Shown here: positions 5,801 through 14,800 of the stretch, piece after piece | Layout of the letters: every line of letters begins with the position of its first letter | Numbering within the stretch: position 1 is the stretch's first letter | Assembly: GCF_006345805.1 (NCBI RefSeq) | Contig: NC_043020.1 | Location: 4,030,001 to 4,094,000 of the forward strand | Origin: Octopus sinensis | Taxonomy: Eukaryota | Length of the DNA: 64,000 nucleotides | Direction: 5' to 3' | Notes under the pieces: model-generated | Databases searched by the model: none | The model's input: the letters and a program-made list of their open reading frames with translations, nothing else | Told to the model about the DNA's origin: nothing | Translations under genes and position numbers: made by a program

Positions 5801-8800
5801 TGCGTGCACTCGTGTATTCACGCATCCATGCTAGCTGGTCAGGACTAGTCGATCCTACGTCTACCTAGCAAAGTAAATAAAACAGAAAATAAATAATTTT
5901 TTTTTTAAGCAAAGCACAAAGTAAGGATTGACTAGGTAGTGCAGATGTGTGAGTGTGCACACTGGGACCACTCTTCTTAAATAGTACCGGTTTCAGAACT
6001 CAGGTTTGTTGCAAATGTAGCAGTGACAAAAAGGGTGAATGTTGCTGAATTCTTTACTAATGAATTTGATGTGCATGGTCCTTAAAGTGCTGGGTAGAAG
6101 AATTCTACCAAGTTAGCAGAGGTTCTGTTAGCAAAGGACCAGCTGCAATTTTGAGCGGTTAAAAGATTTTGCAAACTGTGCAAAGATGTCTTTTATTGAA
6201 GGTGTTTATGAGTTGGTCCTTGTGAGGGTAGTTCAAATGATTGTTAGTGGTGGCTTTGGAAGCCCTCTTTTTGTCAGTTCTTGACTTCAGTATATGAAAG
6301 CATCCTCTCCATGTCAGTGATGTTAGGGTTTACCTCTCCTGTAAATACTTTGCCAAATAGCTCAGATCAAAGAGCAATGCTGTAGGAGTGAACCTCCCAA
6401 TCACAAAACCAGGCTTCTTTCCTACATTCATTACGAACTGAATAAAGAAGACGTATTGTTGGTTGCAGGGGCCTTCATCAGTCAATGGACTCTGTATCTG
6501 TGCTTGTATGTGCAGACCTGGAGGTGGTTTCTTATGTGGAAGACCACTGCTTACCCTGTAACTTTCATCTGCTTCTGCATTGCTGTTGTTGTCCGAAGGA
6601 ACAGTGATACAGCAGGAGCCAGTCGGGGATGATACTTGTGACATTACAAGTGTCGCTGTCATTATACCAAAATCCAGAACGAATACTGCTGGGGATCCTT
6701 TCCAACTCAAGTTTTCTGCCCTTCTCTGTTTTTACCTTAAATTTTGTGCTATTTAAACTGTTCGTGAGCTGGAACAAATATAGAGAAGTATGCTAGCCAA
6801 CACGTTAATAACTTTGTCAATGAATTACTAGTCTTAAACAATTATTGACATGTCTGATTTCTGTTTCAGGTGAATAACTCTAACTCTGATCAAACAAATG
6901 TTGAGATTAGAGGCGACCAAAGAGATGTTGTGAGAGCCAAGGCCCTGATACAGCAAGTAATCGATGGAGACGAGCCTGGTAAGCACTGTGTCTGAGACTC
7001 ACTGCACTGGATGTTGTGTGCAGGCATGAATGTGGTATGGAGTGGTAGTCTTGTGGTTTTGCTTTGGTTGCTATGGTGATGTGTGGTGCTGATGTCTTTA
7101 ATGTTATAATTATGGTAGAACTGCAGGGTGGTTGGTGTTACGAAGGGCATTCGTCTGTAAAAACCATGCCAAAACGGACAGTCTTCTGCCTGGCCAACAT
7201 GGAAGGCAAATGTTAAACGATGGTGGTGATGTGACGTGGTTGTAGTGTGAAATGCTGAGAGGACTCCCATCGATTATTATGGAAATTGGTGAGTCTGCTA
7301 TGGAGAAGCAGCAAACAACCTCCAATGGCATGGCAGAAGTTGGTATGATGCGAATGATCTTTGAGAATTGTGTTATGGGATGTCCTTAACCCAAGATTAG
7401 GTCAGATCAATAGACCTATGGTCAAAGACATTACACCTGTGACCATGCTTCTTTTTTATAGCTGTTGTTTCCAGCTGGTTGAGTGACCATGTAAAGACTT
7501 CTACGAAAGGTGATGTGAGAGATGTTCACAGGTGGTAGTCAAATGTGGATATCACCTTGGATGTGTGGTGAGTTGGGTAAGCTGTGTGCATATCTGTAAG
7601 TGTTAGTTATATTGTGACCAGTTTTTGATTCTAGTATATCTATTTGTTTTCAGCTGAATATCAGAATCGTAGTTACCAGAATAGATTACGGAATAAAGAG
7701 AATTTGGAAAACTCTCGTAAGTATTAATGAATGTGGTGGGATGGGTCTCTAGTCTCCTCTTTCCATCTCCCATCCTTGCTTTCTCTTATCTACCATTTCT
7801 TTCTCATCTTAACAGACCAGAAGTGCTACAATTGTGGTAAAAATGGTCATATATCCAGAAACTGTGATCAAGATCCAGGTAAGAAATTTTTTCAAAGGGT
7901 TTATGGTGGTTTTGTTTTTGGCACAACACTTCTGGTATTGGGCTTCTTGCTTAGGAATTAAGTCTATCTCAAGCTTTTATAGTGTCCTTAGCAGCAGGAC
8001 ACCATCTTGCTTTTATACATATATATATATATATATATGTATATATATATATAGTTTTTTTTTCTTCTATGCTTGCTTGGGTGGCTTTATTTTAGTTATT
8101 TAAACTTTGGACAAAACAGCACAATGGGGTGAACTTAATTTTGTGTTGAGGACTTTTCACTTCCTTGTGTGTCTCATCTAAAATAATCAAAAGTGTACTT
8201 GGAGTATTGTAATGTGTTTACAAACACTTTGTCATCTGACTCTCACCAAGTGTGATGTCAAGTTGCTTTGAGTGCTACTACCAGTGCAATTTGTTACATA
8301 GTTGATGACTAGAACAATACCCACCCTCAGTGGGACAAAACTAAGGCCTGTTAAAAAAGGATGAATGAACCCTGCATAGGATCTCCAATGATTTCAGTTG
8401 AAATATTCAAGTTGGTGAAATAAAACCTCTTAAAGAGTGATAGGCCCTTAATTCTTAACAGAATCATGTCTTGGAGAGAGAGTTAGAAAGGGCCTACTTA
8501 GCAGTAGTGAAGGTGATCTGACAAAAAAAAAAAATTCTGAATTGAAACCCTGCTGTCCTGTTGGTCCCTTAACTTGACAAGGACTAAGGTGGAATACTGT
8601 GTCTTCCAAAATACAAGTCAAATTTTTCAGACCAAAATTTATAGCCAAAAAAGGTAGGTCCAAGATGACTTTGGAGGACCAAAGATTCCAAATGAAATGC
8701 AGCTGGGTTTGGAAAGATAGTGACAATGATTGAATGTTTATACTATATACTATGTTGACTTGTGTGCTAGAAAATATAGTACAATGACAGTTTGATGTGG

Positions 8801-11800: not shown

Positions 11801-14800
11801 ATTGTTGTCCTGATCTTTTGTAGAAGATTGGAATCAGTCACAGCGCAGGGAATCACAACGGATTTCACAGAATGGAAATGGTGAGAGGTTTTCTTATTTC
11901 CCGACTGCCATTCCGGTGTGGTTAACCTGAGGAGTGTTTCGTATGGTTGTGGTAGAGAAGTTTGTTTCACAACTGAGTGGTTTCAAGTTCAATTACCCCG
12001 CTTGGCATTTTGGTCATGTTTTCTAACATAGCCTTCAGTTGACCAATGTTTTGTGAGTGGGAAATGGCAGGCAGGAATAGGGGCCTGCTGTATGTGTAGA
12101 TATACTTGTGTGTGTGTGTGATACACTTATATGTAGGTAAATGTCTGAATATAGTATTCAGGGTTTGAACTCTCTGTGGAACTTTTAAATGTTTTATTGT
12201 ATCCTTGGGTTGATCAATATTTTAAGAGGTTTGGGTAAACAGAAACTTCAAAGAACCCCTATTGGGTGTGTGGGTAGGTACTGGCACAGCTGTATGGTTG
12301 AGAAGTTAATTCCCAATCATGTAGTCTTGGGTTCCATCCCATTGCATGGCACCTTTGTCAGGTGTCTTGTACTATAGACCCCCAGCCAACCAAAACCATA
12401 TCAGTGGATTTGGTGTGTGTGTGTTTAGCTCTGCAGTCACATGTATAAAAGTGCAGCAAGCAGTGTTGTTGTCTCTTGTCAACAAATCCTCCAGGTATCC
12501 CAAGCTGATCCCTTACTTGAAAATTAAGGATCAGGAAGGGCATCTGGCCGTATAACATTACCTCAGCATACACATCCAAACCCTGTTAAAATGAACAAGG
12601 GCCATGTATAAAGAAACTAGATTCCATCCTCTGTGAATTGATGATGCTGACAGCTGCTGCCTTCTGCAACTGTAGTTTGACCATTAGCGTTAATTCCAAT
12701 ATGGTTTGTCGTTGTCCATATCGGCAAATCTTCTGAAACACATTTGTTTCGGTTCCATACTCTTCTCTATATTTGATGATGTGGTCGGACAGGGATTGGC
12801 AAACCATTGGCTATCATAGTTGTTTAGCACTAGATCAACCCTGTTCCATAAGGATCGAAGACATTCTAATCATGACCATCTATATGGTTTTGCAAAGAGA
12901 TCAAGATCACATTAAATTGGTCGATAGTAGAGTGTGATTTGAAGGAGATTTGGTTGTTATTTCTAGCAGCTTGACTGCTTATGTTGTTTCGTCACTGTCA
13001 TAATAAGTCACCATCCTTATTTGCTGTTGTTGTTGTTGCTGTTTCCAGTTAATGAGAAAAAACTGATAATTGCAGATGAGGAGGATTGGGAGGCTGAAGC
13101 TGCCGAAGACCCCCAGCCTGTGTTTATGGCTGATCCAGATTCATTCCAGATGTTGAGCCTCGATGATGAGGAGGATGACCGACCAGCTCGAAGAGGAAGA
13201 GGCAGGGGTGGTGGTCGTAATCGGCAGCAACCAGCGGACCTTGGCCAGTGTCGCAGCATAAGGCCAGATTACTCTGGTGGCAGAGGGCCTGGTCGACAAC
13301 GGGATTCCAAAAAGTCCTTGGAAGGGACCCTGATATGGGCCATGCAATCACGCAATCAAGAAGACGACGAAAACATTCCAGTAACGGAGTCAAAACCAGT
13401 AGATTTTGCAGAGATGCGCCGACTACAAGAGGAATATGATCGGCAAAAGTTTGAAGGTTTGTTTGCAAAACAATTTCTGGGGTTTTTTTTTTTTTTTATA
13501 TAGTTTTGGTCAATGCCCTGACTGTGACCGTTCCACCTTTTTCTTTGTAGGATTCCAGACATTATCTAGATTACCCTTTCTTAAGACGGTAGAATGGAAT
13601 TTGGTTGTTATTTGTAGCTGTTTGACTAAATACAAAGATTTTGCTGTTAGAAATTGTATGTGGAACTTGTTGGATATCTTTTAGTTGTTCTGAGAATTGA
13701 TTCTTCCCAGACCCTTTCCGGTTCATTGGGTTGGCGGTGGGGAGGGGTTGATATTCCCAGGATTCTGTAACCAGGCCCATATGAAAAAGAATTAAAATCT
13801 CACTTGTGTGGTGTTTGACTGTAGGTGGAGGTGGTGGGGCAAGGAAGGAAGGATTGGCTTAGGATATCAGAGCCAAATGGGACGGGGGAGGTGGGGGGGG
13901 GGCTTGGTGTTTCAGGGTGTCGGATTAGAAGTTCACTAATCAAGCATAGGAGTGACTTTTTTGACAGAAGTGCATGACAATGAAGGGTGATTGCGCAGTA
14001 ATGGGTTGTTTTGGGGAAGTTGCAATATCATGGCAGGGGAAGAAGGATCTGAGGAAATGGAAATGGAAGGGGCGGGAGGATGAGAACCTGAAGAATATTT
14101 GTGATTGTTGGAGGGGTTGTGGAATGGGGCAGGGATGGGCCTTGGTGGTGGTGGGGGGTTGAATAATTTACTGATTGGGGTGATTGGAAGGGATTAGCCC
14201 CTAGTCTTCATGGAATAGACATTTCTGCCATGACTATTCCATTTTTTTTTTTATGAAAGGTGTGTATCTGGAACTGGTAGATTTGTATTGACTCTGCTGA
14301 AGGTCATGGATTGGCAGAATGGCGAGCATGGGCCATGTTGTTCTTTCTGTTCTGCAAGGGCCTCAATTCCCATCCTGTCACCAGAAATGATAACTGTGGG
14401 AGCCTAATCTTTTTTGTTCAATCCAGTCACCCCCCCCCCACCTCATACTAATACTTCTAGGATTACAATATTTAACGTATTCTTTCCTTTTTTAGTTGGT
14501 AGGATGTGGTTTGAAGGCGATGTAGCTGTTATTTCTAGCATTATTGATGATGGCATTAGAGGTGGTGTTGATGTTGGTACAATTTCTTTTACCTTTGCAG
14601 GGTTACCACCAGTTGTGAAGAACTTTTACAAGGAACATTCTGATGTTGCAAACATGAGTGAGATGCAGGTTGCTGAGTTTAGGTATTGATTCCAATTGCT
14701 GTGGCCCCTTTTTTTTTTTTTTCTTTTCTTTGTTAGTGGTGGGAAGAAGGAGGGCAGTCCCCAGGACAACTTAGGGTGATGAAACAAGAGACTTGGTTTG

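Follow-up and report, generated by a model that had tools for sequence, protein, structure and literature searches.

DEAD-box helicases of the Vasa/DDX4 type are associated with the germline and carry, before the helicase core, CCHC zinc knuckles whose number varies between lineages. The DDX43 gene of Octopus sinensis described here belongs to a different helicase subfamily, in which a KH domain precedes the knuckles. It lies in a stretch of 64,000 nucleotides (nt) of RefSeq assembly GCF_006345805.1 (contig NC_043020.1, positions 4,030,001 to 4,094,000 of the forward strand), called the window below and numbered from its first letter. In this gene, the linker between the KH and helicase domains is encoded by six consecutive exons that all start and end in phase 1 (1-1). 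The comparisons presented below show that this symmetry follows from exon gain between ancient phase-1 introns, and that a splicing function is not needed to explain it. The best overall account, which we consider quite probable, is a linker filled by the gain of 1-1 exons, with two optional splicing events in Octopus.

The gene shares its KH_1, DEAD and Helicase_C domains with the DDX43/DDX53 (HAGE) family. Compared with other DDX43 genes, those of octopods have one CCHC knuckle and three lineage-specific short exons in the linker, whereas no knuckle is found there in oyster, Lingula, crinoid and sponge. In mouse, DDX43 is needed for spermiogenesis, according to one published study (PMC10294715). 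No paper joining "DDX43" and "octopus" was found by literature search, and a search for vasa splice variants differing in knuckle number returned nothing usable.

The octopus linker is an ordinary member of a well-known class, and its nearest parallel in form is the troponin T block of same-phase alternative exons. The 5' block of the fast skeletal troponin T gene (TNNT3) likewise consists of short adjacent same-phase exons in a flexible region that can be combined without frameshift, their common phase being attributed to exon shuffling (PMC2447309). Octopus DDX43 differs in that its gene models document one cassette exon and one acceptor choice giving four products, and not the three or more adjacent, independently optional exons of the troponin T type. 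More generally, symmetric exons are enriched in disordered regions and often result from internal tandem duplication, the alternatively spliced ones being the most disordered (Schad et al. 2013, PMC3632108). The octopus linker agrees with this pattern, as the predicted local distance difference test (pLDDT) score of its AlphaFold2 model is below 50 at residues 73-97 and 116-281, covering exons 6-8 and most of exon 9, and hence the greater part of the block apart from the knuckle, although the shallow linker alignment behind the model makes low pLDDT weak as evidence of disorder. The linker of the gastropod Gigantopelta, with knuckle and RGG exons that are all 1-1, is a textbook case of the same pattern, whereas duplication is not demonstrable in octopus exons 4-8. 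Tandem alternative 3' splice sites offer another parallel, exon 9 of octopus likewise having two in-frame AG acceptors, 27 nt apart, that are both used in models. In contrast to classic NAGNAG sites, their spacing is larger and the inner site is specific to Octopus and almost devoid of a pyrimidine tract of its own.

The KH-helicase linker of octopod DDX43

The spliced translation of the 25 coding exons is 100% identical to XP_029650463.1 (P0005), the isoform X1 of O. sinensis DDX43 that was mapped on the window. Pfam profiles recognize an N-terminal type I KH domain (KH_1, residues 6-67, 62.4 bits for a cut-off of 21.5), a single zinc knuckle (zf-CCHC, residues 97-114, 27.2 bits for a cut-off of 20.8) and a helicase core (DEAD, 160 bits; Helicase_C, 121 bits), whose motifs I, Ia, Ib, II, III and VI are read in the exon translations as GTGKT, PTREL, TPGR, DEAD, SAT and HRIGRTGR. 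The top database matches are named DDX43/DDX53 in molluscs, insects, brachiopod, crinoid and sponge, as expected of a DDX43 orthologue. A protein search with exon-encoded pieces led to DDX43 of Octopus bimaculoides and Argonauta hians as well as to the Gigantopelta orthologue. The first match belongs to a cluster with four isoforms from O. sinensis, two from O. bimaculoides and two models from O. vulgaris. Exon 9 of the window differs by one residue from the O. vulgaris models, and the sequence matches place the window in O. sinensis or a near-identical species of the O. vulgaris complex. No RNA family was detected above threshold by an Rfam scan of the window.

An earlier note on this DNA had listed five linker exons of 63, 63, 48, 54 and 408 nt, all in phase 1, the 48- and 54-nt ones as candidates. 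Their coordinates, borders and phases are those of the exact gene model, in which both candidates are real exons; the list was incomplete, however, as the 57-nt exon 8 and the inner acceptor of exon 9 had been missed. The block is real and larger than first described, with six exons (4-9) all being 1-1 (Table 1). Exons 4, 5, 6, 7 and 9 have GT-AG borders and join into one open frame. The acceptor tracts of exons 6 and 7 are among the weaker ones, that of exon 6 being 65% pyrimidine. Conservation with Argonauta is uneven, 14 of the 17 codons being conserved in exon 7 while the homologue of exon 8 measures 48 nt and has strongly diverged. Hidden additional cassette exons were sought among the islands conserved between the window and Argonauta, and these corresponded to known exons and interspersed-repeat copies only. 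A 37-nt tandem repeat (3.1 copies, 11064-11178) lies in intron 7, within the range of the block, and displays no sign of exonic use or conservation.

Table 1. Position, size and phase of the DDX43 coding region and of the exons in and around the linker, in window coordinates
Feature	Positions	Strand	Length	Phase	Remarks
Complete DDX43 coding region	2766..30844	+			25 exons; KH_1, one zf-CCHC, DEAD, Helicase_C; exact match to P0005
Exon 3	6870..6978	+	109 nt	0->1	End of KH domain; donor opens the upstream bounding phase-1 intron
Exon 4	7654..7716	+	63 nt	1-1	21-residue peptide; in all models; 66 nt in Argonauta
Exon 5	7816..7878	+	63 nt	1-1	Single CCHC zinc knuckle; in all models
Exon 6	9292..9339	+	48 nt	1-1	Cassette exon; 16-residue peptide
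Exon 7	10026..10079	+	54 nt	1-1	18-residue peptide; in all models
Exon 8	11824..11880	+	57 nt	1-1	19-residue peptide; in every octopod model; fast-evolving
Exon 9, long form	13049..13456	+	408 nt	1-1	3' end encodes the conserved pre-'LPP' segment
Exon 9, short form	13076..13456	+	381 nt		Inner in-frame acceptor 27 nt downstream of 13049
Exon 10 ('LPP' exon)	14601..14682	+	82 nt	1->2	Acceptor closes the downstream bounding phase-1 intron

The phases of the 24 introns read 1, 0, then seven times 1, then 2, 1, 0, 0, 2, 2, 0, 2, 0, 0, 2, 2, 2, 2, 0. When these phases are permuted, a run of at least seven equal ones occurs in about 0.2% of trials (P ~0.002). Each of exons 4-9 has a length divisible by three and equal flanking phases, and the 64 combinations obtained by keeping or omitting each of exons 4-8 and choosing one of the two exon 9 acceptors are all in frame and stop-free, as the first letter of each new junction codon is G or C. 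This bears out the proposal that any subset could be skipped without frameshift. The mixed phases attributed to the helicase core are also found, yet six core exons (13, 15, 19, 21, 22 and 23) are symmetric as well, being 0-0 or 2-2. What distinguishes the linker from the helicase core is thus the run of equal phases, not symmetry as such.

Origin of the phase-1 block

The 25-exon structure is shared with O. bimaculoides and Argonauta hians, in which exons 4-9 are all 1-1 and measure, for Argonauta, 66, 63, 48, 54, 48 and 450 nt. The two introns that bound the block are conserved much further. A homologue of exon 3 ending in phase 1 is present in Argonauta, O. bimaculoides, Gigantopelta (109 nt), oyster (133), the brachiopod Lingula (121), the crinoid Antedon (121) and the sponge Oscarella, and the 82-nt phase 1->2 exon keeps both its length and its phase throughout the eight other species mapped. 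The same-phase bounding introns are therefore found in outgroups devoid of the octopod additions (Gigantopelta, oyster, Lingula, Antedon and Oscarella), and being common to sponge, crinoid, brachiopod, oyster and gastropod, they are ancient.

What stands between these two introns varies from one lineage to another. In oyster and Lingula, the linker contains no knuckle and consists of a single 1-1 exon (117 and 84 nt, respectively), whereas Antedon and Oscarella, also devoid of a knuckle, have a pair of 1-2 and 2-1 exons followed by the 82-nt exon. Gigantopelta has KH exons of 56 and 109 nt as in octopus and the same 82-nt 'LPP' exon, with nine linker exons in between (in order 24, 31+35, 90, 93, 90, 99, 93 and 81 nt). 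Among these, the 90-, 93- and 90-nt exons are near-identical 1-1 exons encoding one CCHC knuckle each, and two are repeated RGG exons, also 1-1. Homologues of the 3' part of octopus exon 9 are the only linker exon in oyster and Lingula, and exon 12 in Gigantopelta. The count of linker knuckles thus ranges from zero (oyster and Lingula) through one (octopods) and two (a squid-like orthologue known from transcript assemblies alone) to three (Gigantopelta). The 14 helicase exons following the 82-nt exon have identical lengths from Lingula to octopus, except for the first of them, which measures 89 nt in Gigantopelta.

Two side observations concern the same genes. The lengths of exons 10-24 (82, 101, 56, 54, 65, 111, 142, 101, 88, 60, 71, 66, 108, 75 and 88 nt) are identical from brachiopod to octopus and largely common to crinoid and sponge, so that an unusually rigid helicase exon structure adjoins a very plastic linker. 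Four DDX43 relatives among the transcript-assembly proteins (P0100, P0102, P0106 and P0112) have no knuckle in the linker and a single CCHC knuckle at the C-terminus (...GCYNCGGSGHFARECP...), from which it follows that the knuckle joined a DDX43-type helicase in at least two positions.

Exons gained between two phase-1 introns have to be 1-1 in order to be tolerated, and a block formed in this way is frame-symmetric by construction. In the simplest relatives, the phase-1 introns, which are as old as animals, enclose either a single 1-1 exon or two exons that are 1-2 and 2-1. Molluscan lineages have since added linker exons, of which only 1-1 additions survive. The added modules differ between lineages, the gastropod having three CCHC exons and two RGG-repeat exons and the octopods one knuckle exon and three short exons. 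Skipping of such symmetric exons is tolerated, and in the RefSeq models splicing in Octopus makes use of two options, exon 6 and the acceptor of exon 9. A comparison of intron phases across cephalopod and mollusc orthologues had been put forward in the earlier note to examine the idea of a splicing switch. The 1-1 block proved to be shared by octopods, but its symmetry was traced to the ancient bounding introns and does not require a switch.

Tandem-exon similarity is clear for the three knuckle exons and the two RGG exons of Gigantopelta, in contrast to octopus exons 4-8, among which a hint of similarity is confined to exons 5 and 6 (P = 0.016, uncorrected). Other origins were considered for the octopod exons. 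E-[DL]-W starts and donors of the similar form GGAAnTG|gt had suggested that exon 7, exon 8 and the beginning of exon 9 are duplicates of one another, but no pair was significant and this was rejected. Exonised repeats were rejected as well, since no further copy of exons 4-8, taken with 150 nt on either side, occurs in the window or at the other loci examined. An exhaustive HMMER search with the exon 9 peptide retrieved nothing beyond the octopod cluster and P0153, a spurious repeat protein; the linker is too divergent to be traced by sequence.

Optional splicing in octopod gene models

The isoforms considered here are computational RefSeq (Gnomon) models, and the splicing results hold at the level of these models. 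In O. sinensis, exon 6 is included in X1 (762 amino acids, aa) and X2 (753 aa) and skipped in X3 (746 aa) and X4 (737 aa), while the long acceptor of exon 9 (13049) is used in X1 and X3 and the short one (13076) in X2 and X4. These lengths decode exactly as plus or minus 16 aa for exon 6 and plus or minus 9 aa for the acceptor, and the four isoforms represent the full 2 x 2 combination of both events. Both isoforms of O. bimaculoides use the short acceptor, X1 (753 aa) with exon 6 and X2 (737 aa) without it. Exon 6 is also included in Argonauta X1 and also skipped in P0003, a protein whose sequence matches the window exactly, and the O. vulgaris models P0008/P0011 use the long acceptor. Exon 6 is thus a cassette exon, with both inclusion and skipping documented, and exon 9 has an alternative 3' splice site, with two in-frame AG acceptors each used in at least one model. 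RefSeq models therefore show four linker-variant proteins differing by 16 and 9 residues, and both optional events are already part of the public RefSeq annotation.

No skipping of exon 4, of exon 5 encoding the CCHC knuckle, of exon 7 or of exon 8 was found in the full-length models of O. sinensis (4), O. bimaculoides (2) and Argonauta (1), nor in P0003. Every model agrees with the suggestion that the 408-nt exon is probably constitutive. The proposal of a splicing switch is thus partly supported and limited in scope: frame-preserving optional splicing does appear in RefSeq, through exon 6 and the 27-nt acceptor shift, but what varies is a peptide of 16 aa and an extension of 9 aa. The CCHC module is skipped in no model, and tuning of the set of RNA-binding modules is not supported.

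Exon 6 is the best-conserved piece of the N-terminal half of the protein. Compared with Argonauta, its 15 full codons all specify the same amino acid, with 6 synonymous and 0 non-synonymous changes, while KH exon 3 is changed at 21 of 36 codons. Its 150-nt intron flanks are 94.7% and 95.3% identical to those of O. bimaculoides, which are the two highest values among the 48 intron ends of the gene, the next best being 91.3%. No Rbfox, Nova or MBNL pattern around exon 6 is shared with Argonauta, and a CU-rich tract about 28-37 nt after the exon 6 donor is the sole regulator-like feature common to all three species. Octopods have kept the exon 6 peptide unchanged, so that including the exon most likely provides the linker with a short functional motif and does not alter the number of RNA-binding domains. 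A broader view, in which the KH-helicase linker is a lineage-specific landing pad for modules, with zero to three CCHC knuckles across molluscs, and exon 6 a newly gained octopod exon turned regulated switch, encoding a short docking or regulatory motif whose inclusion depends on tissue or stage, for example between germline and nervous system, is speculative and on balance rather unlikely.

The inner acceptor of exon 9 has a different profile. The tract preceding 13076 is purine-rich, with 29% pyrimidines, and the homologous position in Argonauta is TG and not AG, which makes this acceptor a novelty of the Octopus lineage. Its use removes VNEKKLIIA and turns the junction codon into D. The optional 27-nt segment contains an in-frame 3-nt indel relative to O. 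bimaculoides.

Optional in-frame variation is also seen in other molluscs. RefSeq isoforms of the DDX43/53 homologues of Mytilus trossulus (P0013, P0015 and P0016) differ by one or two 10-aa REDSNRGFG repeats, and those of Haliotis rufescens (P0060, P0141 and P0144-P0147) by an in-frame block containing the KH domain. Modular in-frame splicing of the N-terminal or linker region may thus be general in molluscs.

Several other readings of the block have to be weighed against exon gain between ancient phase-1 introns combined with two optional events. A run of phase-1 introns arising by coincidence might be imagined from the fact that short exons with lengths in multiples of three are common and that symmetric exons also occur in the helicase core, but the permutation result speaks against it, as does the conservation of the block in three octopods and of the bounding phases from sponge to octopus. 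The cross-species exon and phase maps refute this reading, and its probability is practically nil. That exon 6, and perhaps exon 7, are decayed tandem duplicates of the knuckle exon, with an inherited 1-1 phase and an optional status acquired after loss of the metal ligands, would fit the position of exon 6, which sits where the squid-like orthologue has its second knuckle, and the three tandem knuckle exons of Gigantopelta. A local DNA similarity between exons 5 and 6 (AAATGGTC...CAGRAACTG) points the same way with P = 0.016 by shuffling, but this value is uncorrected for 15 comparisons. Moreover, only one of the four metal ligands would remain, and when scored with a profile of 11 molluscan knuckles the exon 6 peptide is not told apart from its shuffled versions (P = 0.43) and exon 7 gives P ~0.1, so that these exons were rejected as decayed knuckles and such a descent seems improbable. 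A full combinatorial switch, by which exons 4-8 (several of them or all, with the CCHC exon among them) would be retained or skipped independently to tune the RNA-binding set of a germline helicase, draws on the 64 open combinations, on the fully combined events of O. sinensis X1-X4 and on the Mytilus and Haliotis isoforms that also vary by whole in-frame modules. Nevertheless, the absence of exon 4, 5, 7 or 8 skipping from every octopod model and from P0003 argues against it, and the splice signals of the knuckle exon are among the strongest in the gene (polypyrimidine tract with 82% pyrimidines, donor with 7 of 8 matches to the consensus). The squid-like orthologue, besides, appears in well over 100 transcript contigs as a single 742-aa form that has both knuckles, and we hold a switch of this breadth to be quite improbable.

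The two optional events might also be low-level splicing noise or annotation artefacts, hidden from nonsense-mediated decay by the symmetry of the exons. The model-level nature of the evidence is compatible with this, as are the very weak tract of the inner acceptor and its absence in Argonauta, and no transcript-derived protein fragment that spans the linker was retrieved with a 281-aa query. On the other hand, two species have independent annotations of exon 6 skipping, which is also seen in a third model, and the strong purifying selection on its peptide together with the most conserved flanks of the gene forms a pattern typical of regulated cassette exons, which leaves noise a minor possibility. 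Exon gain with two optional events in Octopus remains the preferred explanation, with four points weighing against it. The isoforms are models, as stated above, and the low pLDDT of the linker has little weight as a sign of disorder. The intron conservation around exon 6 is confined to the comparison of two closely related Octopus species and does not extend to Argonauta. Finally, the octopod-specific exons 6-8 resemble neither one another nor the knuckle exon nor any repeat to a significant degree, and may have been gained by duplication or by exonisation.

Neighbouring sequence and significance

A convergent gene encoding a DOMON and cytochrome b561 protein occupies positions 39979-63998 on the minus strand and continues beyond 64000; at least 11 of its exons match residues 211-585 of P0003 exactly. 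The public model P0003 fuses DDX43 exons 1-5, 7 and 8 (2766-11880, + strand) to the DOMON/b561 gene (39979-63998, - strand). The O. vulgaris models P0008/P0011 open with a 21-aa exon (MNEDLLFYAYW...) encoded nowhere in the window and then join exon 9. Taken together, these structures point to either an inversion or wrong scaffolding in that assembly, the breakpoint falling within DDX43 intron 8 (11881-13048).

Repeats are abundant in the window. An array of about 121 copies of a 34-nt unit (49241-53324, 92% matches) lies within an intron of the neighbouring gene; its + strand contains hardly anything but purines and T, and the GC skew reaches up to 1.0. Between the convergent genes, a TA/TG-rich microsatellite of about 1.9 kb (35434-37377) yields a spurious open frame of 493 codons. 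A tandem repeat with 61/122-nt units (about 9.5 and 4.7 copies, 26198-26781) is located in DDX43 intron 20 and directly adjoins a copy of an interspersed repeat resembling short interspersed nuclear elements (SINEs). Seven copies of the SINE-like repeat are present in the window (core 22-mer at 1307, 10735, 26891, 46348, 55986, 59560 and 63595), a full one lying in DDX43 intron 7 (about 10690-10870). As many copies are also found in the Argonauta DDX43 locus, the family predates the split between Octopus and Argonauta.

No new mechanism is revealed by the DDX43 linker. For octopus biology, the analysis provides a corrected exon map, with one missed exon and a second acceptor, and the strict conservation of cassette exon 6 is a modest lead. 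For the family, the linker offers a clean and well-bounded case of intron phase channelling protein evolution, in which two ancient phase-1 introns bracket 1-1 modules that vary between lineages.

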